This document shows positions 21,860 through 39,394 of a stretch of 64,000 nt of DNA, piece by piece (the first letter of the stretch is position 1; each line of letters begins with the position of its first letter). Below the pieces are notes generated by a model, which saw only the letters and a program-made list of their open reading frames with translations, did no database searches and was not told the origin of the DNA. Source of the DNA: Hyaloraphidium curvatum SAG 235-1 (Eukaryota > Fungi > Monoblepharomycota); contig JAIVFI010000006.1 of the NCBI GenBank assembly GCA_025558095.1, positions 186,001-250,000 on the forward strand, written 5' to 3'. The translations under genes and the position numbers were made by a program.

Positions 21860-21863
21860 GCTT

Positions 21864-22339
21864 TGCGAAGGTACAGGACGTCTGACATTCGGACAAGGGT
21901 ATTTTCATTTTCGGTTCGGAGGCGTGGAGGCGTCGGTCCTCGCGATCGACTCGTGATCGACTCGCGATCGACTCGCGAGTGACTCGCGAGTCACTCGCGA
22001 GCGACTCGCGAGCGACTCGCAAGTGACTCGGCACAGCCACCCTCCTGGGATATATAAAGAGCGGGACATGTAACAGTACAATCTTGATCGCCAGTTGACT
22101 CTACGTGCTCTCCGTGTCGTTCGACCACCGTGCGGAACCCCGCCCGGCCGGATCCTCGTTCTGAGAGCCCTTGGGACGCACCCCGGGAGACATCCCGTAA
22201 CCTCTTTCCCCCGGCTACAGTCAAGTATCTTCAGCGCTGTTCGCTTATTCATATTCAGGGCCTATCCGACCCGAAGAGCCGAGCGGGATTCGCGCGCCGG
22301 GTTAGAGCTTCAGGCCCGGTTCCGACCCGGACCGTCGCA
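21864..22339 (+). repeat. 5' LTR (476 bp)
   Basis: Begins TGCGAAGGTAC and ends GGACCGTCGCA (imperfect terminal inverted repeat). No difference from the 3' LTR seen by eye; identical ORFs in the track at offset 10179. Confidence 0.97.
21939..22058 (+). promoter_or_regulatory. LTR U3 enhancer: ~8.5 x 11-bp CTCGCGA(G/T)NNA units followed by TATATAAA (22051-22058)
   Basis: ctcgcgatcga ctcgtgatcga ctcgcgatcga ctcgcgagtga ctcgcgagtca ctcgcgagcga ctcgcgagcga ctcgcaagtga ctcg; the TATA box lies ~20 bp downstream. Confidence 0.8.
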
Positions 22340-22340
22340 C

Positions 22341-22351
22341 TGGTCCGACCT
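22341..22351 (+). other. Primer-binding site TGGTCCGACCT (candidate tRNA-Tyr primer)
   Basis: Starts 1 nt after the LTR with TGG (complement of CCA). It is complementary to ...AGGTCGGA-CCA, the 3' end of CCGACCT-acceptor-stem tRNA-Tyr as known from plants. Confidence 0.65.
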
Positions 22352-22506
22352 CCGTGATCCTGCTCTCGGGTCTTCGACACCTCGTTCGACTTCAGTTTCG
22401 ACTTCGATAATCCAAAAACAACTTCGCCTGGCACCGGCGCTTGTCGACTGCCACTCTTTTCTGTCAACCGTATTCCGTCAACCAAGTTCATTCCCCTTCG
22501 CCAAAC

Positions 22507-24162
22507 ATGGACCCCGTTCAAGAAGCCGCCCCTCAGCAGGAGGTTCAGCAGCCTCAGGAAGCTAACGATTTGCAGAACAACCCGCAGGCCCAGGCGATTA
22601 TCCAAGCTGCGCAGGCCGCGATCCAGCAAGTCGGCGCCGCCGCCAACGACGTCGCCCAACTCGCCGCCCAGCAAGCCGCCCAGCAAGCCGTCGCCGATCA
22701 GCTTGCCGCTCAGCTCGTGGCGCAACAGACCGCTCAGCAGTTGCCAGCTGCCCAAGTTCAACAGCAAGCCGCCGCCGAGCAGCTTGCAGCGCAGCAGCTC
22801 CAGCAGCTCGCCGCACAGCAGCAGGGTCAGCGGAGCGAGCAAGCCCCGGCTGTCAACGCTGCCGCCGCTGGTCTCCAGCCGCAGCAGTTCGTCGACGCCG
22901 TACGGGCCATCGTTGGCGCTCAGCCGCCGAACGATGGAAGCACCGGCCTCCCCCAGGCGGATCGCCAGGGCGGAGCCGCCAAGCTCCCGGCTCAGCTGCT
23001 GCCTGCTTCTGTTCAGCCCTTCGATCCCGCTACGCAGGACCCGGAAGACTTCTTCCGCGACCTCACTACGGTTCTCACGGCGTTCGGCTCCATCAACAAC
23101 CTCGTCAAGGTCTTCCCGGTCTTCCTTGGGCCTCTGCCGCGCGCAATGTGGCACAACATCACGCCGCAGAACCGCCCTCCGGACTATCCCGCGACGGCCA
23201 CCTATCCTCCGGTGACCCAGAACGATGTGCTTGCCTGGCTACGCTACCACTTCGAGCCCCGCGACGCATCGATGCATTATCGCCGGCACTACAACACGAT
23301 TCAGATGACCAACGATGAGACCCTCGACGCCTTCGTTGCCCGCGTATCCCTGGCCGAGACGCGTTTCCTCTCGCACTGCGGCGATCAGCTTCCTACCAGG
23401 GAAGTGCAAGACAGCGTGTACGGCCAGAACCTGCTCTACGGACTGCGCCCGGAGCTACGCGGGAAGGCGCTGGAGCTCCTCGGGGATCACCTCATCAACC
23501 GCACTTCCGTCACCAAGGTCATCGAGAAGATGCGCACCGTCATGCAAGCATCGGGCCCTGCGCAGCCGCGCGACATCCGTTTCCTGGGCCAGAACTCGAT
23601 TTCGGAGATTCCGGCTCTGGTCGGCCAGCACTCGTCTTCGGGCTCCTCCAAGGCGACCGACAAGGCGACGACGGAAGTGCTGCTGGCTCATACGCAGGCT
23701 CTCACAAAGCTGCTGGAGCCTAAGGGAGAGCGCAGGCCCACCGGTGGACCGCCGGGGGAGTCTGCGTTCCGGCCTCCGCGCCGTTTCGTCCCCTTCCAGT
23801 CTCGTCGGAGCCAGCCGTTGCCGCCTTCGGGGCCGAACAGCGACCTCGTCGAGATCAAGGAGCTCATCACCAAGCTGCTGCCGTCGCCTCGCCATCAGGT
23901 TCAGGCCGCGGAGACCAGGTCGAACCCCCCCGCGAGGCCTCCTCCGATCGATCGGCCCCGCCAGCAGCAGGAGCGCCAGGATCGCCGGCCCTTCACCTCG
24001 GAGTACCGCGACCAGAAGCGCTTCCAGCCTCGCCACTGCCATCTCTGTGGCATGGATGGGCATGCTCAGGACGAGTGCTGGGAGTTGGAGAAGAATGCCA
24101 ACCGCCGCCCACTCAACTGGAAGTCTCGCCTCGGCAACACCCCTTCGATGCCAAAAAACTAG
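22507..24162 (+). CDS. gag: Gag (Q/A-rich N-terminus, capsid, CCHC nucleocapsid knuckle)
   Basis: ATG at 22507 (MDPVQEAAPQQ); capsid-like IQMTNDETLDAFVARV...LLYGLRPEL; knuckle CHLCGMDGHAQDEC. Confidence 0.9.
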   Translation: MDPVQEAAPQQEVQQPQEANDLQNNPQAQAIIQAAQAAIQQVGAAANDVAQLAAQQAAQQAVADQLAAQLVAQQTAQQLPAAQVQQQAAAEQLAAQQLQQLAAQQQGQRSEQAPAVNAAAAGLQPQQFVDAVRAIVGAQPPNDGSTGLPQADRQGGAAKLPAQLLPASVQPFDPATQDPEDFFRDLTTVLTAFGSINNLVKVFPVFLGPLPRAMWHNITPQNRPPDYPATATYPPVTQNDVLAWLRYHFEPRDASMHYRRHYNTIQMTNDETLDAFVARVSLAETRFLSHCGDQLPTREVQDSVYGQNLLYGLRPELRGKALELLGDHLINRTSVTKVIEKMRTVMQASGPAQPRDIRFLGQNSISEIPALVGQHSSSGSSKATDKATTEVLLAHTQALTKLLEPKGERRPTGGPPGESAFRPPRRFVPFQSRRSQPLPPSGPNSDLVEIKELITKLLPSPRHQVQAAETRSNPPARPPPIDRPRQQQERQDRRPFTSEYRDQKRFQPRHCHLCGMDGHAQDECWELEKNANRRPLNWKSRLGNTPSMPKN

Positions 24163-24200
24163 CTTTGCCCTCAGTGCCGCACGGCCATAGGGGGGCAGAG
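24153..24200 (+). other. -1 programmed ribosomal frameshift signal (A AAA AAC plus downstream stem-loop)
   Basis: Gag ends CCA AAA AAC TAG and pol is in the -1 frame. CTTTGCCCTC (24163-24172) can pair with GGGGGCAGAG (24191-24200) using two G-U pairs. Confidence 0.85.
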
Positions 24201-27200
24201 ATCCAAGCTCTTGAACCACATGTGGAACCTCTTCCTGGAACTTCCCCGCTGCCGGACGGCACGGACCCTTCATCTCCTGGCGGATCGCCGGAGTTGTCGG
24301 ATTCCGCGACCGATGAACCGACGGCGGAGGACCACGTTCATCATTGGCCCTTCGGGGGCACGGAGTACATCCTCTTCCTCGAGGCGGAGGCAGCTCGACA
24401 GGCCGCCGTTCGTCAGCAGCGGGAGGCGCTCATGCCGATCGACGAGACCCTGGCCCCGCCGCCGGCAGCGGATTCGGCGTCGCCCGGCTCGGTCGAGGTC
24501 GTGGGAAACGGTGAACCGGCGGCACAGGATGCGGACGCGGGATCAGCGGATGCACCTATGCACGAGGGCCCGACCGTCCGCGCCGTTCCCGGACCTTTCG
24601 AAAGGCCCCCTCCTCCTTCCGCCTACGCACGACCACCGCTGCCTGGCCCTCGGCCTCGCCCGCGGCCACCTGCTCCGGTCGCCCCTCCGCCGGATCGCTG
24701 GACGTGGACTTCGCAAGTGCAGTTCCACTATCAGGCGGCACGCGTTTCGGCATGGGTCAACGGCGTGAATACCCCCGCGGCCCTCGTCGACTCCGGTGCC
24801 TCAGTGGTGGCGGTTCGGTCGTCCTTCTTCTGCCGGATCCACCCGTCGCCACCGATCAAACCATGGACACTCGGCACCCTCAGCACGGCCGCGGCCGGCG
24901 GAACCATGTGGGTCCGCGGAGTTGCTAAGATGGACATCCTGGTCGGGAATCAACACTGCGTCATGGACGTCGCCATCATGGACGGTCTCATGGACGACGT
25001 GATCCTCGGCACCCCTTGGCTCTCCGCCCTACGCGTTCAGATGGACTGGGAGACGCCGGTCCTCTATTTCAAGGACGATCCGGAGGGGGTCGTCGTGCCA
25101 ATGCACATTGTTGCGCGACCGCTCTTCGGATCACACCTGGTCGCCCCGCTCCATTCAACCACCTCCATCACGGTCTACCCCAACGAGGACGTCTCGATCA
25201 CCGCTGAGCTGGCCCCGACGACTCCCTTGGCGACCGTCGTGGAGATGGACTTGACAGGGGTCATCGAGACGCCGAACACTTCGCCGTTCGATCGCCTCTT
25301 CATCATCCCGTCGGCGACGCCCGACAGAGACGGTCGGCTGCCGATTCTCATCCGCAACTACGGGACGACACCGGTCACGATCGGCCCGGGCACCCACCTC
25401 GGCCGCTTCCGCGTGCGGATTCCTGGATTTCTCGCTCCGGAACCGCCCACGTATCTGGCTCCCGCGCAGATCTCGATGCTGGAGCCCGAGCTGCCCCACA
25501 CCGAACCGGCCGAATCCACGCTCACGGTCGAGGAGACCATCGATCTGTTCGCGGTGCCCTCGCCGGGATCGATTGGACCACCTCAGCCTCCCGGCGTGGA
25601 GCCTCCTCCGGTCGAGGCTATCGAGCTCAAGATGGACCAAACGATCCTGAGCGAGGGGGACAAACCTCGTTTCCATAAGCTCTGCGACCGCTACCGGGAC
25701 GTGTTTGGTCCTTGGATCGGCAAGCTGCGCAACCATCGCTTCCGGATCGACACGGGCGACCTCAAGCCGATCCACCAGATGCCGTACCGGACCCCGTTCC
25801 GGCTTCGCGGGGAAATGGACAAGATCATCGACGACCTGCTCGTGCAGGGCGTAGTCGTCCCCTCGCGAAGCCCCTGGGCCACGCCCTGCATCATGGTGCC
25901 AAAAGGGCACGGCTCGGGCGAATGGCGCCTGGTGATCGATTACCGGAAGCTCAACGCCGCCACCAAGCGCGACGTCTACCCGATGAAGAACCCAAGCGAC
26001 ACTCTCGCTCTCCTCAGCGCGGCCAAGGTGTGGAGCGTTTGCGACATCCGCTCCGGCTTTTGGCACGTGGAGGTGGCCGACGAGGACAAGGAAAAGACGG
26101 CCTTCACGACGCACCGCGGTCTCTACCAGTGGGAGCGGATGGCCATGGGCTTTACCAACGCTCCTGCAACCTTTGCTCGGATCATGGACGAGCTCCTCGC
26201 CGGCCTCCAGTGGTACTGCTTGGTGGTCTTCATCGACGACATCATTATCTTCTCGCAGACGGTCGACGAGCACCTCGTGCACCTGGAGCTCCTCTTTGAC
26301 CGACTGCGCGAGGCCGGGATGACTCTGAAGCTGGCCAAATGCAAGTTCTTCCGCCGCGAGGTCAAATACCTCGGGCATTACGTCACCGCCGACGGCCTCA
26401 AGGTCGACCCCGAGAAGACCCGCGCGGTGGACCAGTTCCCCCGCCCAACGACCAAGAAGGAGCTCCAATCGTTTCTCGGCCTCTCCAACTACTATCGCCC
26501 CTTCATTGCCGGCTACGCCAACATTGCCAGCCCGCTCACCCGCCTGACGCAGGACGGCGTCTCGGTCTCTCGGGCCTGGGACGACGCATGCGAGGCCGCC
26601 TTCCGTATGCTAAAGGAACGGCTTACGTCGGCGCCCGTGCTCCGTCGCCCCGACTTTTCCAAGCGCTTCGTCTTGTTCACGGATGCCAGCGATATCGGCC
26701 TCGGCGCGGTGCTCAGCCAGCGGGACTCCGATGGCAAGGAGTACGTCATCGCCTACGCCAGCCGCGCTCTGCAGCCGAACGAGCGCAAGTGGGACACTCG
26801 GGAGCGCGAAGCCCTGGCCGTTGTTTGGGCATGCGAGCATTTCCGGGCGTATTTGATCGGGGACGAGTTTGAGGTGGTCACCGACCATAGCGCCCTCAAA
26901 TGGCTCTTGGAGACCTCCAAGCCGGGCCGCCTACAGCGCTGGATCCTCCGGCTCTCGGACTTCAGGTTCCAGATCATCCATCGCTCGGGCAAAGCGAACT
27001 CCAACGCCGACTTCCTGTCTCGTCAGCTCGTGGCGCCGTCGCCCGACGAGGACGTGCCTATGGGCGACCCCGAGGAAATCTTGGACATCCCTGCCTTTTG
27101 GCCCCCAAACCCTCCCGACCCCTTGCCTTTTTCTTCTTTTTCTGGGGGGGGACGGGCGCCCGGATTCCTCTCCGGGAGTGATCTCGGTCAGACTTCCCGT

Positions 27201-29210
27201 TCTTCGTCAACCCCAGTCACCGAGTCAGACTCGGGACGAGCTACTGCGGGTTCCTCAGTCAATTGTGAATCAATGGAGCGAGTGCTGTCTGGCACGGAGT
27301 TCCCGGCCACGGTTGCCGCAGTGGAGGGAACCCTGTGGAGCGATCCGGGGACCCTGCCCGAGGCTGCGGCACCGGAGACGCAGATCCTCCTGCCGATCCC
27401 AACGACGAACGCACAGGTCGACCCGGCAGACGTGCCTGAGCGAGACCTGGCGTTCCTTCATCCGGCACTGCTTGAGGTGCTACCCGATGTCGGGGGCATC
27501 AGTGCTATTGACCTTGCCGACGTCAGATCCCGGGATGCCCTGCGCAAAGTGCAAGAAGCCGACGTCGAGACCAGCGCGCTGATCCGCTTCGTGCGAGACG
27601 GGGAGCTCCCTCCCAACGTGAATCTGGCCAAATTCTGCAAGAAGTACGGCGAGCAGTACTTCCTCGCTACGGACGGCGTGCTCTGCCGGCGCGATGTACT
27701 CGCGACTGGTACCCGTCGTATCCCGGTCACCCAGCTCGTGATACCGCACGAGCTGAGGGAGGCCTACCTGCAACGTGCGCACGACGATCCCCTGAGCGGG
27801 CACGTCGGGCGACACCGGGCGTACAGCAATCTGCGGCGCCGCGTATATTGGGTCGGCATGGCGCACGACGTTCGCCGCTGGACGCGAGCCTGCCTTACAT
27901 GCATGACCCGGAAGATGCCTTCGGTATCGAACCAGGGCTTACTGAAATCGGTTCCTCTCACAGGTCCCAACGAGGACATCTACATCGACTACATCGGCGA
28001 GATCAATCCGGCCACGCCCCGCGGCAACAAGTACCTTCTCGTCGTCTACGATCCGTTCACTAAATGGGTCGCGGCGTATCCGACTCCGGACCTCTCTGGG
28101 CCGACGACGGCGAAGCTGCTCTATACGCGATGGATTCTCGAGCACGGTCTTCCGAAGCGGATTCACCACGACAACGCCTCGAACCTGGACAACCATTACA
28201 TGGAGTACCTGCTCAAGCTACTCGGCATCAACCGGGGCCTGGTCACGGTTGGGCATCCCAGGGCTTCCCTCGCGGAGCGCCCGAACCGGTGGATCATCGA
28301 CGCCCTGAGCGCAGCGGTCTCCAAGAACTACCAGACATGGGACGAGGACATCGTGGGGGTCATCTTTGCCTTCCGGACCTCCATCCACGCGACGACCGGC
28401 GAAACTCCGTTCTTTCTGATGCATGGTCGGGATGCTCGTATTCCGCTCGACCTACTTTACGACGAGACCGAGATTCGCGAGCCAGTGCACCTGCGGGCCA
28501 GCGACGAGGAGGACAAGAAGACAGAGGATGAGCGCCGGCGGACCTACGTCGTGGAGCTCGTGGCGCAGCTTCGTGCGGCCTACGACCTGGTGGCCGAGAA
28601 GATGGCCGCAGCGGCGGAGACTCGGAACGCCAAGGCCAACGCTACCCGGCTTCCGATTACCTTCCGCCCCGGCGACCTCGTGCTCATCTGGGGACCAGAA
28701 CGACCGCGCAAGGGCGAGCCGGGCAAGTTCGTCTCTCGTTATCTTGGGCCCTACCGCATCGAGGAGTCAGGCCACACCGAGCTCACCTGGAAGTGTAGAC
28801 ACGTCTACGAGACCGACCACGTCACCACTGTGCATGTGGACCGGCTGGCGCGCTACAAGCCTTGGGAGTCGGCCACCTTCAACGCGCGCTCGTGGAACGC
28901 ACGCGCCCCGGAGCTCGCCGCCGGTGAAGAGCTCGATCTCTCGGAACCGGTGAACGAGTTCGAAGAGGAAATCGAGGTCGAGAACGCGCTTGGGAACGAG
29001 CAGGAGTACACCGTCGAGGACATCGTCGGCCACGAGGGCCAGGGTCACGGACTCAAGTTCGAGGTCAAGTGGCGGGGCTTCGCTCGCACGACCAAGCTCC
29101 CTCTGGACATGTTGCACGGCGCCATAGGGATCGTCCGCGCCTATGCCGATCGCGTTGGTCTCCAGCTCCCGACGGGTCTCCCCAGGCGCATGCGGACTCG
29201 GCGTCGCTAG
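24153..29210 (+). CDS. pol: Pol polyprotein: protease, dUTPase-like remnant, reverse transcriptase, RNase H, integrase, chromodomain
   Basis: ALVDSGAS (PR); WRLVIDYRKLN, DIRSGFWHV, FIDDIIIFS (RT); TDASDIGLGAVL, EREALAV, TDHSAL, NADFLSR (RH); HDDPLSGH...CLTC, IDYIG, HDNASN, AERPNR, LGPYRI (IN); EYTVEDIV...FEVKWRGF (chromo). No internal stops. Confidence 0.97.
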   Translation, partial: KKLALPSVPHGHRGAEIQALEPHVEPLPGTSPLPDGTDPSSPGGSPELSDSATDEPTAEDHVHHWPFGGTEYILFLEAEAARQAAVRQQREALMPIDETLAPPPAADSASPGSVEVVGNGEPAAQDADAGSADAPMHEGPTVRAVPGPFERPPPPSAYARPPLPGPRPRPRPPAPVAPPPDRWTWTSQVQFHYQAARVSAWVNGVNTPAALVDSGASVVAVRSSFFCRIHPSPPIKPWTLGTLSTAAAGGTMWVRGVAKMDILVGNQHCVMDVAIMDGLMDDVILGTPWLSALRVQMDWETPVLYFKDDPEGVVVPMHIVARPLFGSHLVAPLHSTTSITVYPNEDVSITAELAPTTPLATVVEMDLTGVIETPNTSPFDRLFIIPSATPDRDGRLPILIRNYGTTPVTIGPGTHLGRFRVRIPGFLAPEPPTYLAPAQISMLEPELPHTEPAESTLTVEETIDLFAVPSPGSIGPPQPPGVEPPPVEAIELKMDQTILSEGDKPRFHKLCDRYRDVFGPWIGKLRNHRFRIDTGDLKPIHQMPYRTPFRLRGEMDKIIDDLLVQGVVVPSRSPWATPCIMVPKGHGSGEWRLVIDYRKLNAATKRDVYPMKNPSDTLALLSAAKVWSVCDIRSGFWHVEVADEDKEKTAFTTHRGLYQWERMAMGFTNAPATFARIMDELLAGLQWYCLVVFIDDIIIFSQTVDEHLVHLELLFDRLREAGMTLKLAKCKFFRREVKYLGHYVTADGLKVDPEKTRAVDQFPRPTTKKELQSFLGLSNYYRPFIAGYANIASPLTRLTQDGVSVSRAWDDACEAAFRMLKERLTSAPVLRRPDFSKRFVLFTDASDIGLGAVLSQRDSDGKEYVIAYASRALQPNERKWDTREREALAVVWACEHFRAYLIGDEFEVVTDHSALKWLLETSKPGRLQRWILRLSDFRFQIIHRSGKANSNADFLSRQLVAPSPDEDVPMGDPEEILDIPAFWPPNPPDPLPFSSFSGGGRAPGFLSGSDLGQTSRSSSTPVTESDSGRATAGSSVNCESMERVLSGTEFPATVAAVEGTLWSDPGTLPEAAAPETQILLPIPTTNAQVDPADVPERDLAFLHPALLEVLPDVGGISAIDLADVRSRDALRKVQEADVETSALIRFVRDGELPPNVNLAKFCKKYGEQYFLATDGVLCRRDVLATGTRRIPVTQLVIPHELREAYLQRAHDDPLSGHVGRHRAYSNLRRRVYWVGMAHDVRRWTRACLTCMTRKMPSVSNQGLLKSVPLTGPNEDIYIDYIGEINPATPRGNKYLLVVYDPFTKWVAAYPTPDLSGPTTAKLLYTRWILEHGLPKRIHHDNASNLDNHYMEYLLKLLGINRGLVTVGHPRASLAERPNRWIIDALSAAVSKNYQTWDEDIVGVIFAFRTSIHATTGETPFFLMHGRDARIPLDLLYDETEIREPVHLRASDEEDKKTEDERRRTYVVELVAQLRAAYDLVAEKMAAAAETRNAKANATRLPITFRPGDLVLIWGPERPRKGEPGKFVSRYLGPYRIEESGHTELTWKCRHVYETDHVTTVHVDRLARYKPWESATFNARSWNARAPELAAGEELDLSEPVNEFEEEIEVENALGNEQEYTVEDIVGHEGQGHGLKFEVKWRGFARTTKLPLDMLHGAIGIVRAYADRVGLQLPTGLPRRMRTRRR
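27131..27156 (+). other. Candidate central polypurine tract (T-rich box + G8)
   Basis: TTCTTCTTTTTCTGGGGGGGGACGGG resembles the 3' PPT context CTTCTTTTGGGTGGGGGCG and lies ~45 bp from the element midpoint (27191). Confidence 0.55.
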
Positions 29211-29280
29211 TAACACCAACGACGTCTATCCGGTCACAGCACTACCATCTCTGTGCTCCGATCCCCGGCTTTTCACTGAC

Positions 29281-30266
29281 TCAAACCCGACGTACTACCT
29301 CGAGCCTATCCTCGACCCCCTCGAACGCCAACTTGTGATACCCGGACTGAAAATGCGTGTTCAGATTGCCCAGGAGGCCCTTAGCCTTGTGCTTTACCAG
29401 ATGGCACCACGGGAACGAGCATACCGCCACTTCGCCCTTGGTGGGGCTCCGGTACAGTTCGCCGGCGTACGTTCCGGCAATCTTCCATCGGAGGAAGGAG
29501 CCTGCCGGCACGGCATCAGGGACCTTCTTCGTCACCCGTTCCGCCTTCAAGCCCCAGACCGGCGACGACTTCTTCATCTGGCACATTCAGTGACGATCAG
29601 CGCTTGTGGGGCGTACTCCCGTCGAGCCGTTCACCTGCGCAATCTGCTCCCGGGCCTCCCCGCGCTGCACCACATGCCCCTCGTCTTTACCTGAAGTTGC
29701 CGTTTGGGCCGTCTGGAAGGCGCTCCCTTGTTCAGTGGCGGCCTCGAAGTCGCCTAAGTGGTCCAGCTCCCAAGAGGGCGCATGAAGCGTGACTGACAGC
29801 ACGGGGACTTCGTCGGCCGCCTCGAGCTCCTCCCTCGAGTCCGCCGCCGACTCGCCCTCGCCGACGGAAGGCGCACCCTTCGACGACATCGCCGGCAGGA
29901 AGACGCCGGAGGTCCGGGTTGCGGCCGCGGCCGCGATCGGGTCGTTGCCTCTGGCCCCGCCAGCCTCGCGCAGCTTGGCGGTCCCGCCGGCCTCGCGCAG
30001 CTCGGCGACGAGCCGACGGAGCACTCGGACCTCGACAACGACGTTCCCAGCCTCTTCGGCCAGCGGCAACATCCCGCGCATGGCGGCCAGACGCACCAGT
30101 TGCAGGAAGCAGTCGACCACGTCGTCCTCCTGGCGCGGCGCTGAGCTCCCGTTCGAGGACCACGCCGCTACGCTCTTACCTTGGTGCACAGCAGGACGTC
30201 GAAGGTCGGCAACCGAACCTCGAACCACGAACTCGGCGGGACGACGTTCGGCAGCTCCGCACTCAT
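29281..30266 (-). CDS. Antisense accessory gene of the retrotransposon, spliced (exons 30266-30180, 30129-29635, 29577-29281; ~292 aa), C-terminal BED-like zinc finger
   Basis: Two phase-0 introns of host-typical size (50 nt GTAAGA...CCAG; 57 nt GTGAAC...CTGAT...CCAG, containing the in-frame stop) give one continuous frame. It ends KKSSPVW...VAVCSFPWC...LGNLNTHFQSGYH. Confidence 0.7.
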
Positions 30267-30406
30267 GACAGGCGCGGAGATCCCCCCAGCTCTTCTGGAC
30301 CCTACGTCGCGATCCCCCGCGAGCGCTTTCGTCGACGCAATGGCGTACGGCCCTCGCTCGCGCCCCGTCCCCCGTGGCGGGGACTGGTGACCCGGTGTGC
30401 GGGCGA

Positions 30407-30566
30407 ACTCGCGGTCGACTCGACTCGCAGTTGACTCGCGGTTGACTCGCGGTTGGCTCGCGGTTGACTCGCAAGTGACTCGCGAGTCACTCGCGAGTCG
30501 CTCGCAAGTCACTCGCGAGCGACTTGCGATGCACTCGCGAGTTGCCTGCGCTTCGCACCATATAAG
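30407..30566. promoter_or_regulatory. Internal (probably bidirectional) promoter: ~12 x 11-bp ACTCGCG(A/G)(G/T)TN array + TATAA (30561-30565)
   Basis: Same unit and similar array-to-TATA spacing (~18-20 bp) as the LTR U3. It lies between the divergent ATGs at 30266 (-) and 30635 (+). Confidence 0.75.
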
Positions 30567-30634
30567 CGGCGGACCATAGGAGGCCGCGGCCGCGGACTAC
30601 GCACCCAACGTCGACCTCGCCGCTACCGTCTCCC

Positions 30635-31900
30635 ATGGCGACCCCCACGACTGCCGGCCACAACCTGCGGCCCCGCCGGCCGCATGTGGCCACGGCGCCG
30701 CCGCCGGCGACTGCGCCCGTCGCTGCGTTGCCTGGCGTCGTACCCCCGGACTATCGGTCGGCGCTTGCCTCCCTCTCGACCCGGCTGGACGACCTCCGGG
30801 CCGACCTCGACGTCAGACACTCCCAGACGACGGCCCACTTGCACAAGGTCGAGCAGGCCGCCTTCTCCGCGGTCATGCCCATCCGCGCAGCCCTCGACGC
30901 ACTCCACCCGGTGCTCAACACCCTCGTCAATGTCGGCAACCTGGAGCAGCACGCTCTTGACCGCGTAACGGCGACGCTCGAGCAGCAAGAGGCCCGCCTG
31001 GACGCCCAGATCCGCCAGCAGCGTGACGAGCTCCAGGTGGTCCTCAGTGGCCGCCACCGCGAACTTGAGTTCGCCGTCACCGCCTTGCGCCGGACCGACG
31101 ACGCTCGTCTCGGTGCCATCGAGACGCAGCTCGACCGGCTTGCGTTGGTGCTCGAGGCTCAACGTCAGAACTTCAACGGCATTCTCCTGGTGGACGAAGC
31201 TACCATCGAGGAGTTGAGGGAGTTCGGCTCTTCCCTCGCCGGGCTGGTTGCTCAGACCGGGACCAACCTCGAAACCACCATCGAGACCGTCGTCGAGACC
31301 AATCTCGCCCGTCACAACAATGGCCCCATGGCGGAGTTTGCGGCCGACCTCAAGAGCGTCCTGGCGGCCCATCTGCAGCGATTTGGGTCGGAGCAGCACA
31401 AGCAGCTCATGCTTTCAGCTCAAGACGACACCACGCTCCTCACGGCCGGCCTGAACGCGCAGCGCGAGCACTTCACCAAGACCGCCGACGAGCAACGGGC
31501 CCTCCTGCGTCGCTTCCTCGGCAATCAAGTGGCTCCCCTGGCGGGGCAAACGACGCCCGCCGTGGTCACCTCCACGCCGGTCGGCCGCGTCAAGGACGAG
31601 GACCTCGTCACCTCCGACGATGAGGCTGGGGATATGCAACCTCCAGCTCCTCGCCCCGAGAGCGTGTCCAGCAGCGACGCCTCCTCCATCGTCTCGCAGG
31701 ACGACGGCCTCTTGGCCGCCCTGTACGACGACATCCCGGCCGCTCCCTACAAGTCGACCATGCCCCCGGTCTACACCCCCTCGGCCGCGGACGGCTCAGC
31801 CGTGCATGCCGCCTTCGCTCTCGGCTTTACCCGCCGGCTCCGCGCCCCGCCGCCGAGCGACGACGAGGCGGACGCCGACGTCGACTTTGAGGACGCCTAA
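30635..31900 (+). CDS. ORF3 of the retrotransposon: 421-aa soluble coiled-coil protein with acidic tail, unknown function
   Basis: Uninterrupted ORF with GC3-rich codons, ATG 70 bp after TATA, long heptad helices, no signal peptide or TM segment. Confidence 0.8.
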   Translation: MATPTTAGHNLRPRRPHVATAPPPATAPVAALPGVVPPDYRSALASLSTRLDDLRADLDVRHSQTTAHLHKVEQAAFSAVMPIRAALDALHPVLNTLVNVGNLEQHALDRVTATLEQQEARLDAQIRQQRDELQVVLSGRHRELEFAVTALRRTDDARLGAIETQLDRLALVLEAQRQNFNGILLVDEATIEELREFGSSLAGLVAQTGTNLETTIETVVETNLARHNNGPMAEFAADLKSVLAAHLQRFGSEQHKQLMLSAQDDTTLLTAGLNAQREHFTKTADEQRALLRRFLGNQVAPLAGQTTPAVVTSTPVGRVKDEDLVTSDDEAGDMQPPAPRPESVSSSDASSIVSQDDGLLAALYDDIPAAPYKSTMPPVYTPSAADGSAVHAAFALGFTRRLRAPPPSDDEADADVDFEDA

Positions 31901-32030
31901 GCCACCCTTCGGCCCTACACTCTCCAACATCTGTTGTCTCCACCTCGGCCTTCAACATCTTCTACTGCAAGCATGACGTCACTCCGCGGAGGATCTTCGA
32001 TTTCGTGGCGCCGAGGGCGGCGCCTTCTTT

Positions 32031-32042
32031 TGGGTGGGGGCG
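32031..32042 (+). other. 3' polypurine tract
   Basis: TTTTGGGTGGGGG-CG immediately before the 3' LTR TG. Confidence 0.8.
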
Positions 32043-32518
32043 TGCGAAGGTACAGGACGTCTGACATTCGGACAAGGGTATTTTCATTTTCGGTTCGGAG
32101 GCGTGGAGGCGTCGGTCCTCGCGATCGACTCGTGATCGACTCGCGATCGACTCGCGAGTGACTCGCGAGTCACTCGCGAGCGACTCGCGAGCGACTCGCA
32201 AGTGACTCGGCACAGCCACCCTCCTGGGATATATAAAGAGCGGGACATGTAACAGTACAATCTTGATCGCCAGTTGACTCTACGTGCTCTCCGTGTCGTT
32301 CGACCACCGTGCGGAACCCCGCCCGGCCGGATCCTCGTTCTGAGAGCCCTTGGGACGCACCCCGGGAGACATCCCGTAACCTCTTTCCCCCGGCTACAGT
32401 CAAGTATCTTCAGCGCTGTTCGCTTATTCATATTCAGGGCCTATCCGACCCGAAGAGCCGAGCGGGATTCGCGCGCCGGGTTAGAGCTTCAGGCCCGGTT
32501 CCGACCCGGACCGTCGCA
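32043..32518 (+). repeat. 3' LTR (476 bp)
   Basis: Direct repeat of 21864-22339, followed by the TSD GCTT. Confidence 0.97.
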
Positions 32519-34257
32519 GCTTGTCCTGCGAGCGTGCTCGATGTTATGTTGAGTTTGCTCCAAACGCGCTCCAGGACCTTCGAATCATGCAGCCTCAATG
32601 ATTCAAACAGTACGTCCCCATCAGCACCGGTTTCCCGGGCCCGCAGCAGCAGCTCCTTGAAAGCCGAGAAGTCCGCGTTGAACCTCTTGTCAAGCTGTTC
32701 CTCTTGGATCTGGTTCTTCGCCTTTGGAACAAGCACAACCAGCTTTTCGAGCAATCTGATCTGCGCTTCGGAAGCGGCATCAATGAATGTCCGATGCTTC
32801 TCCCGTCTGGAAGCCGAAGCACTCCTCAATGCCTTCCCACAGGCGTCAATCTCAAGCAGGAGTGCCAGGCACTTCTCCACAGGTTTAAGAAGCTTGTTCT
32901 CAGCGATTCCAACGGCGCGAAGCTTTATGTACCATAGATAAAGGTCTCGCAATGCGCTCTCCTCCCACTGCTGACGAGGACATACACGCTGCCCATCAAA
33001 ACGCCAGCTCAAAAGCCAGCTTCGCCAATCCTCTAGCGCAGGAAACGGCTCCTTTGCGCGAGCACCGCCTGTGGGGTCATGAAGACGCACAGGAGAGTTC
33101 ACTTTGGCAACTAAACCCCCTGCAGCACCCAGTCGAAAAAGGAAGTCGATGTCCTCGGCACACGTTAGGCCAGGAATGAAGTCCTTGCCACGTGTTAGTC
33201 CCGGACGCAGCAGAAACGCCTTGTAGACGTTGCTTGGCACCTTACGATTGCCTATCCATTCATGACCGGCTGGATGGTTGAAAGCAACTGGCGTCGTGCC
33301 CGGAGCCTTTTGCGATGTCTTGCAGAATCCGATCACAGCAGGCCGTACTCTGACGTTCGTCTCCCGCAGCCGGGCTGCGGCCTCGTCTGCAGTGGCCACC
33401 GCCTGTGCAACAGCATCCACAGCTGAGACCGGTTTCGCAAGCTTCTGCCAGGCACTTCCAGCGAGCTTCAAACCCTTCGACTCGTCCTTGTCGGGAATTC
33501 GGGAGAATGTGCAGTTGTCGTCCAGCATCCAATACTCTCTAGAAATTGTTGAGCACTGGGGTCGCTCGCATCTGAAGCACACCTACTTGAGCAGAACACC
33601 CCTTGGCCCGGAAGGAAGAATACCGTTCACCATGGCCCGGTGCAGTACGAACCGAGCATAGGCAATGCCGCGTCCATCGTGAGGTAGAACAGCGAAGGTC
33701 AAGTTGGGATACGCAGCCGCGTATTCGGCGTATTGAAGAGGCTCGACGACGACCACAGCGATCTGGTCCCGTGCAGTGACTCTAGCGTCCTTGCTGAGCT
33801 CCCGGAGCAAGGGCGCTTGATCGCTCCCAGCACGGCCCGCGCTCGGCACAAAAATTGGGATCCGCTCTGGACTCCTACGAGATCTTATCAAATCGAGAAG
33901 TTCCGCTGCTGCAGCGCCTTTGAATTCAACGATTTCAACCACGGCTTCATGAAGAGCATATGGAAGATTGGATATCGCGACATGGAACACGTCCTGATGT
34001 ACTGTGACCGGGAGTGGCGTGGGTGACAGGGCACCGGAACGCGCTGGATGTTCGCGGGGCTTGCTCGTGGAGTAGTAGCGCTGTTGAAGCGTCGTAGTGG
34101 TGCTGACCATCGAGCGCGTGCGACGCGCCACCGGCTGTTCGGGAGTGGGAGGCCGTGGCGTTTCGGCAGCGGGCACTCTAAGGCCACCGTCCGCGGCCAC
34201 GCCCGGGGGCGCCGCTGCGGCACGCTGGACATCAGACTTCTTCGGCTTCGGAGGCAT
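32519..34257 (-). pseudogene. 5' part of a GREB1-like / TET-JBP-associated (J-base glucosyltransferase-like) glycosyltransferase gene, interrupted by the retrotransposon; intron 33539-33586
   Basis: IPIFVPSAGRA, VVVVEPLQYAEYAAAYP..AVLPHDGRGIAYARF, EYWMLDDN, CAEDIDFLFRL follow the GT-A motif order of this family. A 48-nt GTAGGT...TCTAG intron joins ORFs 33583 and 32434 in frame. Confidence 0.7.
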
Positions 34258-34492
34258 CGTCGGCGTCCCGTCGGAATGGAGGTGCAAAATCTTTGGTAGG
34301 TCGTCGGAGGATGTTCCAAGTGATTGCGGCGAGAGTTCAGGGTCCTGCCGAATCATGCCGCCGACAGTAGGGTCAGTCACGGACCATGGGTGTGCGCATC
34401 ATCATCATCATGTTGAAGACAAAGAAGACCAAGCTATGCAACAGTATCGCGCAACGGAATCGCGGAATCAAAGATCGTGCCCCCGGCACCCC

Positions 34493-37400
34493 TCAAGCCT
34501 CTGCCTCGTCGTTCAGATCCCTCCAGTCCGTATCCTCCACCCCCATCGCTCTCGCCCGTGCCTCGAGCTCCTCCATCTCCTCGTCCTCCTCCTCGTCCTC
34601 CCTCCTCTCCTCGCGGCAGTCGCACTTCGCCGCCTCGAGCATCCGCGCGCCGTGCACTCCGAGCAGCTCCAGGCACCGCGTGGCGGCCTCGCGCCGGGAA
34701 AACTTCTTACTGCGCGCCTTGGCGTGCGCGAGCTCGGCGTCGTGGTGCATCACGCGGCAGATGAAGTGCGTGGGGCTGCTGTCGAGGGTGCGCTCCTCGT
34801 CGACGATGTGCTCGTAACTGGGAAGCAGGATGCATTGAGAGGCCGAGTCCCTCGGTCAAGCGCACCATCGGACGACCCACGTGAACTTGAGCCCCCTGCA
34901 GCGCCTCGCCAGAAGGACCTGCACGACAAGCTGCACCGGGTGCCGCGGCGGCCTCCTCGGATCGATGTTCTTCTCCACCAACGGCAGCATGACCCTCTTG
35001 AACACCCTCTCCACCGCGCGCAGGCTGAACCCCGAGTCCAGGTACACCGCCCCCAGCATCGACTCGACGATGTCGGCCAGCGCCTTGGGCGCCTGCAGCG
35101 ACATCCACCTCAGCTTCGGGTCGGGGGCCAGGTGGCCGTACTGCGGGTCCCTCTTTTCCGGCAGCGGCTCGCGGCGCTCCAGCTGCTCCAGGTCGTCGCA
35201 GTAGTCCCCCACGGCGTGGAGCAGCGCGCCCGAGCCGTGGTCCAGGTGCACGTGCAGGCCGAGGCGGACGCAGAGCATGGCCAGGAAGTTGTTGCAGATG
35301 GCAACCTCGCGGAGAGCGGTGAGCGTGCCGGGGGTGGCGTGGGAAAAGTGCTCGAAGAGGAGCGAGGTGACCATGGTGCTGAGGATGGCGTCGCCGAGGA
35401 ACCTGAGGGGATCGGGTCAAGTCAGCTCAGTGTCCATGGCCTCGACCGATAGCGGACGCACTCGAGGCGCTCGTAGCTCCGGACCATGGTGTCGATGGCG
35501 CTCTCGTGCGTGAGCGCGGAGAGGCAGAGGAGCTTGGACCTGAAGGTGTACCCCAGGATGCTCTCGACCAACGGCACGCGCGAGAGCTTCGGGTGCTGGT
35601 CCGGCGAGTCGAGGTCGTACGGCGCGTCGAGCCCGCACTGCTGCAGCACAAACTCCTCGCTCAGATCCGTGGGCAGGGTCGCCTCGAGGTCGAAGACCCG
35701 GGCGAGGAACCTGTCCGCTCCGGCCTCGTCGCGCAGGTAACATGCTCCGACGACGGCCTCGACAGTGTCGGCCAGCGTCTTGATGGACAGGTTGACCTGC
35801 GTGTCCGCGTCCGGCTTGAGCTTGGGCGGTCTCCACTCCTTCCACTTCAGCGAGCACTTGCCCGCGGCGATCGACGCGGGCCACTGCGGATCCATCTGGA
35901 TGATCTTGCGCCCGAGGAAGGTGTTGGAGACGAGGAAGTTGCGCCTCCGCGTCAGCGATCCCTGCGCGTAGCCCCTGTCCTTGACGAACGTCCGCGTGGT
36001 GGTGAAGAACTTGATGTGGGCGTCGCCGAGGAACTCGAGCCGCTCGAGGTTGGACTCCTTGAGGCCCAGGAGGGAGCTCTTGGCCAGCGTCATGGCGGGA
36101 ACGAGCTCCTCGGGGCACTCGCGGAAGAAGAGCCCGTTTCGGTCGTTGAGCTCCCTCGCGAGCAGGTTGAGCTTGAGGAACTCGATGACCGACGGCACGA
36201 AGAAGGCGAAATCGACCAGTTCCTTCTCGAGCGGGTTGACCTTGAGGTACTGCGGGAAGACATAACGGTCCGACGAACGCTTGGCGCCCGCCATGCCCGG
36301 CTGCGGGAACGGACCGAAGGGCCTCGACGCGCGGTCGGGCTGCAGGTAGTCCAGCTTCCTTGGCAGCCGCTGGGCCAGGTAGACCGACTGGTTCGGGTCG
36401 ATCCTCTCGAGCGGGATGTTGTGCGACTTCATGTAGGCCGAGCAGACGCGCAGGTCGGGCTTGAACGGATCCAGCATCATGTGCGGCGTCAGGCGCTCGC
36501 AGCGGTACCGGTACAGGTACTTTTGCGGGTGCGTGCCGACGGTGTCCTCCAGGATGACGTCGCGGAGGTTCCTCAGGGCCTCGTACTCCATGTCCGACCT
36601 GCCCACGAGCTCCGAGACCAGGATAGGGTTGTTGGCGTATCCGAGGTGCATGCGCATCCTTTCGACGTCGATCCCGTCCCGGTGGTCGCTGGCAATGCAC
36701 ACGAGCAGGATGGCCGGGTCCTCCTGTGCGCTGTACACCGGCCTCGCGGGAACGGCCTCCCCATCGACCTCCATCGGGTCGCTCTGGGCTACGGGCCTCC
36801 GCTTGAGCACCGTGTTCCACACCAGCGCGCTCCACTGCATGAACATGTCGAGCTTCTCGGACGAGATCTCCTCGCTCCGCACGGTCTTGACGGAAAAGGG
36901 CTCCGTGTTCTCGCCGTCGACGAAGAGCGGGATTTTGACCTCGCGAGGGAACGCGTACCGGGTCAGCAAGCCGATGGTCTGCGCAGAGCCCTTCCTCTCG
37001 ATCACGTTCAGGTAGGTCATGTTCGTGCTCCCCGGAACGTGCGACCACGGAGTCGCCTGGGCCCAAAGCTTCGGCACGGCCGGGGCGATGAACCTCTCCT
37101 CTTCCTCCAGCTCCAAGAGGTCCTTGGGATCGGGATCCGGCTTGGGCGGCAGCAGGTTCTCGTCCAGATAGCCCAGATCCCGCAGCACCCTCAGGAGCGA
37201 CATGGCTGCCGCAGCCTTGGCGATGCTCCTGCTCCGGCGCTTGGCGCTGAACCACTGCCTCAAGGCCTCCGGTAGGTTGGTCGACGGAATCCTGACCGAG
37301 CACTCGTGCTCTTGTGCTTCGACAGGCTCGGTTCCGAAGCGGAAGAGCGGCCGAGGACTGTAGTAACGGTCGCCTCCCAAGCGCGCGCAAAAGAGCTCCA

Positions 37401-39394
37401 GACGTGCTACAGCCAGCGACAGCGGCAGGTACGCGCCCGTCTCGGGATTGTGCAAGACATCCGCGGGGTCGTGGAGGATCTGCATGTCGTCCTCGAGGAA
37501 TGGCGTGCCTTCTGCGAGCGACTTGTTGAACACGATCTCCTTGTTCTTCAGGTCGCTCAGCTGCTTGATGTCGTTCTCGTTCGCGTTCTCGGCAAACAAG
37601 AGGTACTGGGACCTCAGATGGCGAGCTCTGCCCCTGGACTGTATGTACGAGATCAGTGTCTTGGGCAGGTCGAATCTGGCGCGGGAGAGGACGGTAAGAA
37701 GACGAGCAGAGAAGCAAGAAGCAACCCGACGAACCGGATGACGAGCTGGCAGGGTTTGATGTCCAATCCTTCCTCAGCGACCGCAGTAGCAACGAGCGTC
37801 GTGATTTCTCCCTTTCGGAACTGTGGAACAATAAGCGGGCGGCAGGCCAAGATTCGCGCACATGCTTGCCTTCCGTATCATCTCGTTCTGAACCCTGTAG
37901 TCCATCGCTTGGCCGCGCGTGTTCTCCTCGAACGCACCGGCCGACCCGTGCCCGACAATGACCCCGACGGAGCTCCCAATCTCCCTTCTCAAGATTGCGG
38001 CAAGCGCCCACGCCGTGGCCCTTCGCTCCACGAAGATGATGCCGCAGTACTCGGGCTGCTGACGCAGCTCGACGAGCTGTTCCATGAGCTTCTGAACCTT
38101 CGGCGAATGTCGCAGGAAGTGAAGCGGCGTGGGCTCCCTCGCCGTCGGGCGAACCGAGTTGATCAGCTCATCCAGGAAAGGCTCGCTGGTTCGATTCCGG
38201 GCATAGTACCTCCTGATCCAGTTCTGGAGCTCCGGGAGCGACTCGCGGAGGTAGATGTCGGCAGCACGCGTCCCGAGGGCGACCATGATCTCGCGTGCAT
38301 CGGCAACAAGCTTGAGGAAGACCTTGGGCGGGTCCTCGACATTCGCGGCGGCGAAGCGCTGGCTGGCCAGATCCGCAGCCGCAATGAGCCGATCAAACAG
38401 AGGGAACGCGACCGACTCGTCGTATTTGTCGAACCAGACTAAGCGTTCCTTCGCGCGGGCCACGAAAGCTGCTATTTCGTTCTCGTCGCAGGTGATGATC
38501 TGGCAGTTGATGGCGCTCTGCAGCTGGCTGTGTTTCGTGTGATGTGCGGATAAGCATGCTGCGTCCAGGTTCGATAGTGTGCACTCACGTCAACCCGACT
38601 TGAATGTCCTGCTTGCCGACGATAGGGCTTGCGGTCATTCCGAAAACCTTCGGCCTCTCCTCGAGGGGCGTGGTGCGGTAATATGTGTCGAAGATCACGT
38701 TGTACGGATGCTTGCGCTTCGCGTGGTGGCATTCGTCCAGGATCAGAAGGGCGATGTCCTGCAAATGCGCGTCAAGAGTTGCCAACGAGTGACTCAGGCC
38801 CGGAACGTACCTTCATGCGAACAAAGCCGCAACTGATGATGTTGAGGAAGATGGCTGCGGTCATGCAGTGCACGTTGGTCTCCTCGAGGTTCGACTTCCA
38901 CCGCGGCCCGTTCCACGAGTCCACGTCCATCTCGCCGCAGTAGCTCTTCACGTGGGTATCGCAGTGGCGCCGGAGCACGTCGCTTTGCTGGAAGACCAGC
39001 GGAACCAGGTTGACGAGGAAGAAGACGAGCTTCGGTGCCGAAGGTTTGCTGCGAGCAATGTCGAGTGTGTGCTTCACCAGCAAACCTGCAGCGAACCAAG
39101 AGTTAGCTGAGTTGTCGGCATTATGGCGCGACGCGCGACCGTACAGCTGATCAACGTCTTGCCTGCTCCGGTAGGCAGCACCGCGACGACGTTGCTTGTT
39201 TTCGCAACCTCAAACACGTTGAGCTGGTACGCCCGAGGGTGAAGCCGAGCCTCTTCCTTGGCAATCACGAGCTTGGGTTGAGCAGGGGGCGCCGTATTCT
39301 CCTTGCTATCGACGTGCATGACCGCAGGAGCCGCGCTTTCCTTGCCGTCGACCTCCATCGGAGCCACGTCCGCGAACCTCTCGCCCAGGGCCAT
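34493..39394 (-). CDS. DCL: Dicer-like endoribonuclease (helicase, Dicer dimerisation domain, PAZ, 2x RNase III, dsRBD), multi-exon
   Basis: PRAYQ...[90 protein letters not shown], terminal dsRBD helix. Confidence 0.95.

Follow-up and report, generated by a model that had tools for sequence, protein, structure and literature searches.

Accessory genes with their own promoter have been described between pol and the 3' LTR of retrotransposons (PMC7264820). Among the elements of the plant Tat lineage (maize Grande with its gene23, rice RIRE2, and Retand of Silene and others), the excerpted accounts describe for Grande an antisense gene with its own promoter and a nuclear protein product, and for Retand short tandem-repeat arrays between pol and the 3' LTR, with products thought to be DNA-binding (PMC7264820, PMC11963269). 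In the Boty-like Gypsy elements of the fungus Botrytis cinerea, the region between pol and the 3' LTR houses an antisense gene, brtn (Zhao et al., 2011, as reported in excerpts of PMC7264820 and PMC8365987).

The Hyaloraphidium curvatum element described here, identified in a 64-kb window (the whole stretch of DNA that was analysed), likewise has a long region between pol and the 3' LTR with an antisense gene, and it resembles Retand, as excerpted, in having a tandem repeat array in this region (30407-30544). However, no sequence relationship to Grande, RIRE2 or Retand was found, nor any similarity to TRP28 (PF04195) or gene23; the hosts are flowering plants for the latter elements and an early-diverging fungus for the former; and, in contrast to the plant elements as described in the excerpts, the antisense gene of the H. 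curvatum element stands head-to-head with a sense gene. An internal repeat that has the unit of the LTR U3 together with an in-phase TATA box is not described for Grande, RIRE2 or Retand in the excerpted text (PMC7264820, PMC11963269). Boty is similar, being a fungal Ty3/Gypsy element whose extra antisense gene lies past pol and ahead of the 3' LTR; its excerpted descriptions contain no report of a paired sense gene or of a U3-like internal array. An exhaustive search with exon 3 of the H. curvatum antisense gene returned no Botrytis protein, so there is no detectable homology to Boty, and brtn is compared by description. As far as these accounts extend, the closest precedents are the plant Grande and Retand antisense genes and tandem repeats, and Boty brtn. 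An earlier note on this DNA had presented the system as undescribed in a zoosporic fungus, which was overstated, since antisense genes, own promoters, tandem repeats and putative DNA-binding products are all on record in these partial accounts (PMC7264820, PMC11963269, PMC8365987).

The likeness to foamy viruses is one of layout only: besides the LTR promoter, a second, internal one would lie upstream of the accessory genes. It differs in that the H. curvatum internal promoter would be bidirectional, with a tandem array in common with U3. A spliced antisense gene that encodes a protein is a feature in common with deltaretroviruses. In the latter, the gene has its start in the 3' LTR and its product is a bZIP protein, whereas the H. 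curvatum gene starts internally, and neither a bZIP nor another domain was detected in its product. Searches of Pfam and the PDB identified no homologue of a retroviral accessory protein or transactivator among the proteins of the element; the earlier likening to Tas, HBZ and VANC stands as an analogy of layout but not as homology.

Structure of the element

The H. curvatum element at positions 21864-32518 is a Ty3/Gypsy LTR retrotransposon, 10.65 kb in length, that is intact and was inserted recently. The 5' LTR (21864-22339, plus strand) and the 3' LTR (32043-32518, plus strand) are 476 bp each, are 100% identical and have TG..CA ends, and alignment of the borders of both LTRs revealed a 4-bp target-site duplication, GCTT, on both sides of the element (21860-21863 and 32519-32522). 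A candidate primer-binding site (22341-22355, plus strand) has its TGG one base past the LTR, and the 64-kb window contains no tRNA; a polypurine tract (32032-32042, plus strand) adjoins the 3' LTR.

Both gag and pol are uninterrupted. The gag gene (22507-24162, plus strand) encodes a protein with a Q/A-rich N-terminus and one CCHC zinc knuckle near the C-terminus, for which a Pfam search gave no family match. The pol gene (24075-29210, plus strand) shares 88 nt with gag, being in the -1 frame, and its single frame of 1,711 codons encodes protease, RT, RNase H and integrase domains in that order (PF13650, PF00078, PF17917/17919, PF17921 and PF00665). This domain order and the gag knuckle are those of Ty3/Gypsy elements, as are the direct LTRs with TG..CA ends and the short target-site duplication. 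The element had previously been labelled a chromovirus, for which there is a partial match to the Chromo profile (PF00385) near the C-terminus of pol (E 0.003, profile positions 1-27 of 53), although its score of 18 bits lies under the cut-off of 25.1 bits. The interval from the pol stop at 29210 to the 3' LTR is 2,832 bp; the anatomy proposed in the earlier note, with this pol stop, an interval of about 2.8 kb, a sense ORF3 and a spliced antisense gene, was recovered at the same coordinates throughout.

Sense and antisense accessory genes

The sense gene, ORF3 (30635-31900, plus strand), is intronless and encodes 421 aa, starting at the first ATG past the internal TATA box. It corresponds to annotated H. 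curvatum proteins (P0002 and P0001), with P0002 differing by 1 aa, and annotations with at least 99% identity exist at four further H. curvatum loci, at three of them with the same extent of 421 aa. Its codon score is 0.43 bits per codon, scored as coding while held out of training. The protein has a proline-rich N-terminus, long helices (residues 38-300) and a disordered acidic tail (301-421); the structure model is all-helical and soluble-looking, at low confidence (pLDDT 53). ORF3 does not look like an errantivirus-like Env with a signal peptide and a transmembrane segment, since there is no hydrophobic segment (maximum 19-residue hydropathy 1.20).

For the antisense accessory gene (29281-30266, minus strand), the codon statistics and a paralogue support a predicted three-exon model: exon 1 (30266-30180; 29 codons), a 50-nt intron (GT..AG), exon 2 (30129-29635; 165 codons), a 57-nt intron (GT..AG), and exon 3 (29577-29281; 98 codons and the stop). 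Exon 1 is placed by codon statistics and first-ATG position only; from 30560 to 30100, the minus strand has a single ATG, at 30266. Codon scores rank the predicted frame first among six in every exon and turn negative in intron 2 and upstream. One divergent paralogue emerged from an exhaustive search, the H. curvatum protein KAI9034073.1 (P0003; 43% identity). Its match to exon 3 has an E-value of 2e-19 pairwise and 4e-11 across the library, and its match to exon 2, colinear with that to exon 3, an E-value of 0.003. The tblastn alignment runs from exon 2 into exon 3, leaving a gap close in length to intron 2. All four positions of a basic, C-terminal Cys-x4-Cys-x16/18-His-x5-His motif are kept in both proteins, and the C-terminal domain of the antisense protein is basic (exon 3 pI 9.9). 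The gene is absent from the public H. curvatum protein annotation at every copy of the element family.

Annotation at the sister loci and the held-out codon score bear out the earlier claim of a sense ORF3, just as the paralogue alignment across the exon 2/3 junction and the codon scores do for the spliced antisense gene; at the level of sequence, these data establish both as genuine protein-coding genes. They also bear on a reading in which control is exerted by RNA, such that the antisense transcript acts as dsRNA that limits the element and the reading frame is incidental. The antisense gene lies wholly within the genomic transcript, its transcript would pair over its whole length with the 3' part of the genomic RNA and have a 3' end that must reach into pol, and such antisense RNAs are discussed for other retroelements in the excerpted review (PMC7264820). 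However, the frame is conserved as protein relative to the 43%-identical KAI9034073.1, which has the four Cys/His positions too and aligns across the splice junction, and the exons show a coding codon signature, so that we consider this reading very improbable, although the transcript could act as RNA and also yield a protein.

Neither accessory protein could be assigned to a known family. Pfam searches with ORF3 and with the antisense exons (the latter at E-values up to 10) gave nothing beyond a sub-threshold match to baculovirus PEP_C; a PDB sequence search with both proteins gave no significant match, the top one, for the antisense protein, being a C2H2 finger of KLF5 (E 0.42); and fold searches with the low-confidence models of both (pLDDT 43 for the antisense protein) gave no match. 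The Cys/His motif of the antisense protein has no match among Pfam zinc fingers in a comparison with C2H2- and BED-type families. The earlier interpretation, that the element encodes its own DNA-binding regulator and a partner protein, is sustained with respect to architecture but not function, since neither protein matches a DNA-binding or retroviral regulator family. ORF3 has no detectable relatives beyond H. curvatum, and the exhaustive search gave no real homologue of the antisense protein outside this species. Metagenome and viral-contig scans contained no divergent sister element, and the known ORF3 copies are all nearly identical.

That both proteins are orphans confined to H. curvatum would suit passenger cargo, either an existing pair of host genes or two individual ones, captured recently and amplified without a role in the life cycle of the element. 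KAI9034073.1 may be an ordinary host gene, the identity of at least 99% among all ORF3 copies indicates that the association may be young, and gene transduction by retroelements is documented in the excerpted review (PMC7264820). We nonetheless judge such cargo to be rather unlikely, as we do its acquisition by read-through or template switching in one lineage of the element; against it, ORF3 is intact both in at least four full-length annotations elsewhere and in the present copy, and the promoter region and introns considered below are also unfavorable to it.

Repeat arrays and TATA boxes

Tandem Repeats Finder (TRF) identified period-11 arrays in both LTRs (21939-22030 and 32118-32209; 8.4 copies) and in the accessory region (30407-30544; about 11-12 copies). 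The internal and U3 arrays consist of 11-bp units with a common palindromic CTCGCGAG core; in the register table, the CTCGCG core is present in six of the eight units of the U3 array and in seven of the 11 full units of the internal array. A 20-nt pattern that covers two units has 32 matches in the 64-kb window, all within the three arrays, compared with 0.04 in shuffled sequence, which upholds the earlier claim of three arrays with a common unit. The exact octamer CTCGCGAG occurs four times per array and three times in the rest of the window. Overall, the internal array is a quasi-palindrome, with 67-nt arms that are 73% complementary.

On the plus strand of the 10.65-kb element, TATAA occurs only at 22053, 30561 and 32232, in each case directly past an array. 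The LTR TATA box (22051-22058, and 32230-32237 in the 3' LTR) lies two periods past the last array unit, and the internal one (30560-30565, plus strand) one period past it, 74 nt upstream of the ORF3 ATG. The internal array was previously proposed to reproduce the unit and spacing of the U3 array; the unit is the same and the TATA box is in phase, but the distance from the start of the last unit to the TATA box is shorter by one unit (27 nt versus 37 nt in the LTR). The start codons of ORF3 and the antisense gene are separated by 369 bp that contain the internal array, so that the proposed head-to-head layout around an array and TATA box holds for the divergent genes and for the sense side, but the antisense side of the array has no TATA box.

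The palindromic CTCGCGAG core is reminiscent of the vertebrate "CGCG element" TCTCGCGAGA, which in the excerpted account is palindromic and directs bidirectional, methylation-sensitive transcription (PMC6192621). This is an analogy only: the "CGCG element" is described there as a single copy in TATA-less CpG-island promoters of animals, whereas the H. curvatum arrays comprise 8-12 tandem copies with 11-bp spacing and a one-sided TATA box.

An internal array with the unit and period of U3, a TATA box in phase and a short extra likeness to the LTR directly past that TATA box might be what is left, after erosion, of the U3 in an older 3' LTR, behind which ORF3 was placed by read-through or recombination, with any promoter activity a by-product. 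However, similarity to U3 fades beyond the array and TATA box, there is no trace of R or U5 in the 74 nt before ORF3, and the internal array is palindromic and longer than the U3 array; both the relic and this route to it appear decidedly improbable. A relic would, moreover, account for the origin of the region and not for its present function, and is compatible with a second promoter. For passenger cargo, the same region is harder to accommodate: the intergenic promoter region is built from the U3 unit with the TATA box in phase, and a U3 unit between the genes is not expected of a captured host promoter.

A probable divergent two-gene module

We consider it probable that this intact, young Ty3/Gypsy element stably carries a self-contained, divergent two-gene module downstream of pol. 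The internal array and TATA box would form a second, bidirectional promoter that answers to an array-binding factor common with the LTR; because the internal promoter and the LTR would respond to one such factor, the genomic RNA, a 3'-coterminal ORF3 mRNA and the antisense mRNA would be switched on jointly. The accessory genes are predicted to be untranslatable from the genomic RNA, and each would therefore need the internal promoter. During passage through RNA, sense introns would be lost, while antisense introns would be kept because they cannot be removed from the genomic RNA. The sense ORF3 has no intron and the antisense gene has two short ones, the pattern that an RNA intermediate predicts, which favors a history in which the element and its module have moved together; repeated RNA passage of this kind also speaks against passenger cargo. 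Promoter activity, start sites and splicing of the module are predictions from the sequence.

The accessory proteins would most likely serve the expression or replication of the element itself, which is the least supported step of this explanation; if one of them binds nucleic acid, the obvious candidate is the basic Cys-Cys-His-His protein. A more specific proposal is that the antisense product is a new type of Cys-Cys-His-His DNA-binding protein that acts on the CTCGCGAG-core units, with or without ORF3, in a feedback on the LTR and on the accessory genes; we regard this as quite unlikely. In such a loop, the 11-bp units in both LTRs and the internal promoter would be recognized, and any partner would be the acidic-tailed ORF3 with its putative coiled coil; we give such recognition no greater credence.

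Implications

To our knowledge, LTR retrotransposons are usually assumed to be wholly dependent on host factors for their transcription, and 25 years after they became known, the accessory genes of plant elements still have no assigned function. In the H. curvatum element, one repeated motif visibly links the LTR promoter to the accessory genes and to the promoter predicted for them. With a young element present in multiple copies and a small, sequenced genome, the role of the accessory genes is approachable through expression and distribution data. If the feedback loop were true, it would mean that a retrotransposon of an early-diverging fungus encodes a transcription switch, with a logic like that of complex retroviruses. 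The element adds two orphan protein families and is, as far as is known, the first retroelement to be described for the Monoblepharidomycetes.

Element structure and genomic surroundings

The Ty3/Gypsy element occupies window positions 21864–32518 and is bounded by 476-bp LTRs (TG..CA) that are 100% identical to each other, with a 4-bp duplication (GCTT) on either side. A TGG is found one base past the 5′ LTR; the 3′ LTR is directly preceded by a purine tract. Both gag (22507–24162, + strand; one CCHC knuckle) and the pol frame (24075–29210, + strand), which shares 88 nt with gag in the −1 frame, are unbroken, and Pfam matches to protease, reverse transcriptase, RNase H, and integrase follow the Ty3/Gypsy order; for a chromodomain there is no more than a weak, partial hint below the Pfam cut-off (E 0.003). 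No breaks were counted in gag, pol, or the sense accessory gene ORF3, nor in the antisense accessory gene under its splice model. The identical LTRs and intact genes mark the element as a very recent insertion.

The N-terminus of gag (22507–23000, + strand) is a long Q/A-rich low-complexity region, and gag has no match to a Pfam gag family. Two stretches of pol are also without a Pfam match, namely ~224 residues ahead of the protease (24075–24746, + strand) and ~260 residues that separate RNase H from the integrase zinc-binding domain (26961–27740, + strand); both are unusually long for a Ty3/Gypsy pol.

The window has a G+C content of 57–73%, and the host genes flanking the element encode an MFS transporter, an FGGY kinase, MatE, an amidase, a fungal transcription factor, and an LRR kinase. 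Scans of the 64 kb for tRNA genes and Rfam families found nothing. About 1 kb past the 3′ LTR, an ORF (33586–34380, − strand) has a sub-threshold match to PF20691 (TET-associated glycosyltransferase; E 1.3e-5, 25.7 bits vs a cut-off of 27.5), and its large neighbors (32434–33582 and 35417–38011, both − strand) have no Pfam match. These ORFs may hint at a DNA base-modification locus.

Repeat arrays and TATA boxes

Repeat arrays are present in the U3 of both LTRs (8.4 copies each) and between the two accessory genes (30407–30544; ~11–12 copies), and a period of 11 was obtained for them with both Tandem Repeats Finder and a repeat finder. The earlier note had proposed that the element carries an internal copy of the LTR U3 array and TATA box, and this copy is real, far beyond chance: a two-unit pattern has 32 matches in the window against 0.04 in shuffled sequence, and all 32 are inside the three arrays. 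In the 11-nt register, 6 of the 8 U3 units and 7 of the 11 internal ones have the core CTCGCG, and every array contains four copies of the exact palindromic octamer CTCGCGAG. Across the whole element, TATAA is found on the + strand at three positions only (22053, 30561, and 32232); each follows an array and keeps its phase with an offset of at most 1 nt. The claim of U3-like spacing therefore holds for the period and the phase, but not for the distance from the last unit to the TATA box, which is 37 nt in the LTR vs 27 nt internally. Beyond the array and TATA box, the internal region has no alignable similarity to U3. The internal array additionally forms a quasi-palindrome with arms of 67 nt that are 73% complementary.

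All units that depart from the CTCGCG core (in 21939–22030, 30407–30544, and 32118–32209) do so by CpG-to-TpG or CpG-to-CpA transitions, which number two in each LTR array and four in the internal one. Cytosine methylation could have left this footprint, as could plain transition bias.

The sense accessory gene

ORF3 (30635–31900, + strand; 421 aa) begins at the first ATG past the internal TATA box. Its codon-usage score, with ORF3 held out of training, is 0.43 bits per codon, which is the highest of the six frames and at the level of gag and pol. ORF3 has database relatives only among hypothetical proteins of the monoblepharidomycete H. curvatum, in line with the zoosporic fungus assumed in the earlier note: a search of 5.8 billion proteins, in which the 8,000 candidates sharing the most words were scored (so distant relatives could escape), returned only its own 90% cluster, and a metagenome scan gave no match.

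Within H. curvatum there are at least five ORF3-bearing loci. An ORF3 protein of 421 aa that differs from the window copy by one residue has three accessions on one 816-kb scaffold (KAI9025608.1, KAI9025610.1, and KAI9025612.1). The accession numbers of these identical proteins are two apart, which suggests element copies that are adjacent or in tandem, with one other annotated gene between each. A fourth annotated ORF3 model in the public annotation (KAI9000422.1, 411 aa) has N-terminal residues that match the strand complementary to pol, with the remainder corresponding to ORF3. It is therefore a chimeric gene model, and its locus is a rearranged copy of the element, with one putative rearrangement.

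The ORF3 protein has a proline-rich start, long helices at residues 38–300, and an acidic disordered tail (pI 4.05). There was no Pfam match, no PDB sequence match, and no fold match at E ≤ 0.001, the last on an AlphaFold model of low confidence (pLDDT 53). An env function is ruled out by the absence of a hydrophobic segment, and a second gag by the lack of similarity to gag.

The antisense accessory gene

The antisense gene (29281–30266, − strand) is modeled as three exons starting at 30266, the only minus-strand ATG between 30560 and 30100. Its GT..AG introns are of 50 nt (intron 1) and 57 nt (intron 2), either of which would stop translation if retained; the single in-frame stop that separates two long antisense ORFs is within predicted intron 2. 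In all three exons, G+C by codon position on the minus strand is low at position 2 and highest at position 3, as expected of coding sequence, a pattern not seen in the adjoining parts of their open frames. The predicted frame of each exon also has a positive codon-usage score (training set: gag and pol), the highest of the six frames, and intron 2 and the upstream sequence score negative. The score is an imperfect test of coding, with one ORF antisense to ORF3 also reaching 0.17.

Homology evidence comes from KAI9034073.1, a 274-aa H. curvatum hypothetical protein. The exons were searched separately rather than as a joined product, and in an exhaustive HMMER search of 1.84 billion representatives with exon 3 this paralog was the sole real relative (E 4e-11; 43% identity over its residues 164–253); the second match, a bacterial Ig-repeat protein, was rejected as spurious. 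Exon 2 aligns colinearly further up the same protein (E 0.003), and a tblastn alignment of the paralog covers the end of exon 2 and continues into exon 3, with ~17 extra codons on the window side, which is the size of intron 2. Thus, exon 2 (30129–29635) and exon 3 (29577–29281) each combine a coding signature with a match to the paralog, and the predicted exon 2/3 junction is supported because this homology runs across it; the predicted exon 1 (30266–30180) and intron 1 rest on codon statistics and first-ATG position. Protein searches with exon 2 alone returned no match, a profile built from the paralog and exon 3 returned the paralog only, and neither a metagenome scan with the exon 3 alignment nor viral-contig scans found anything. 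An exact look-up found none of the products of the window copy in the protein collection.

The antisense protein and its paralog both retain a Cys-x4-Cys...His-x5-His motif in a basic domain (pI 9.9), which is compatible with a zinc finger; this reading was not confirmed by profiles (no Pfam match for any antisense exon or the paralog), PDB sequence searches (none significant), or the exon 3 AlphaFold model, which is of low confidence (pLDDT 43). Exon 2 also contains a 27-bp unit in 1.9 copies (29956–30007, − strand; 92% identity) that doubles a short peptide in the protein's acidic middle part.

Proposed function of the accessory module

The start codons of the two accessory genes are 369 bp apart, with the array mid-way, and no earlier ATG precedes either of them in its own direction. 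Neither gene would be translatable from genomic RNA, because ORF3 sits behind pol and the antisense gene is on the other strand, so both would require a promoter between them. The pair is most simply read as sharing a bidirectional internal promoter made of the same units as the LTR enhancer, through which one array-binding factor would turn on all three transcripts together. The earlier note had envisaged a self-regulatory system; that the array-binding factor is the element's own Cys/His protein seems to us improbable, the alternative being a host protein.

A nested transposon is ruled out as the source of the module by the absence of flanking terminal repeats. The sense ORF3 has no introns and the antisense gene has two, a pattern that repeated passage through an RNA intermediate would produce and that argues for the module as part of the element, not a newly acquired passenger.

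Published accounts describe antisense accessory genes in the interval from pol to the 3′ LTR as "relatively frequent" among plant elements; in Grande, gene23 has a promoter of its own and its product is nuclear (PMC7264820). Retand elements combine tandem arrays in this interval with antisense genes of this kind, which are putatively DNA-binding (PMC11963269), and the Boty element of Botrytis includes the antisense gene brtn (PMC7264820, PMC8365987). None of the accessory proteins of Grande, Retand, and Boty is detectably homologous to ORF3 or the antisense protein. A vertebrate promoter motif with a CTCGCGAG core is reported to drive bidirectional, methylation-sensitive transcription (PMC6192621); the core it has in common with the H. 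curvatum arrays offers an analogy, not evidence. A literature search found no paper on retroelements of Hyaloraphidium. What appears to be new in this element is the divergent gene pair, the use of an identical repeat unit in the internal and U3 arrays, with an in-phase TATA box, and the host lineage.
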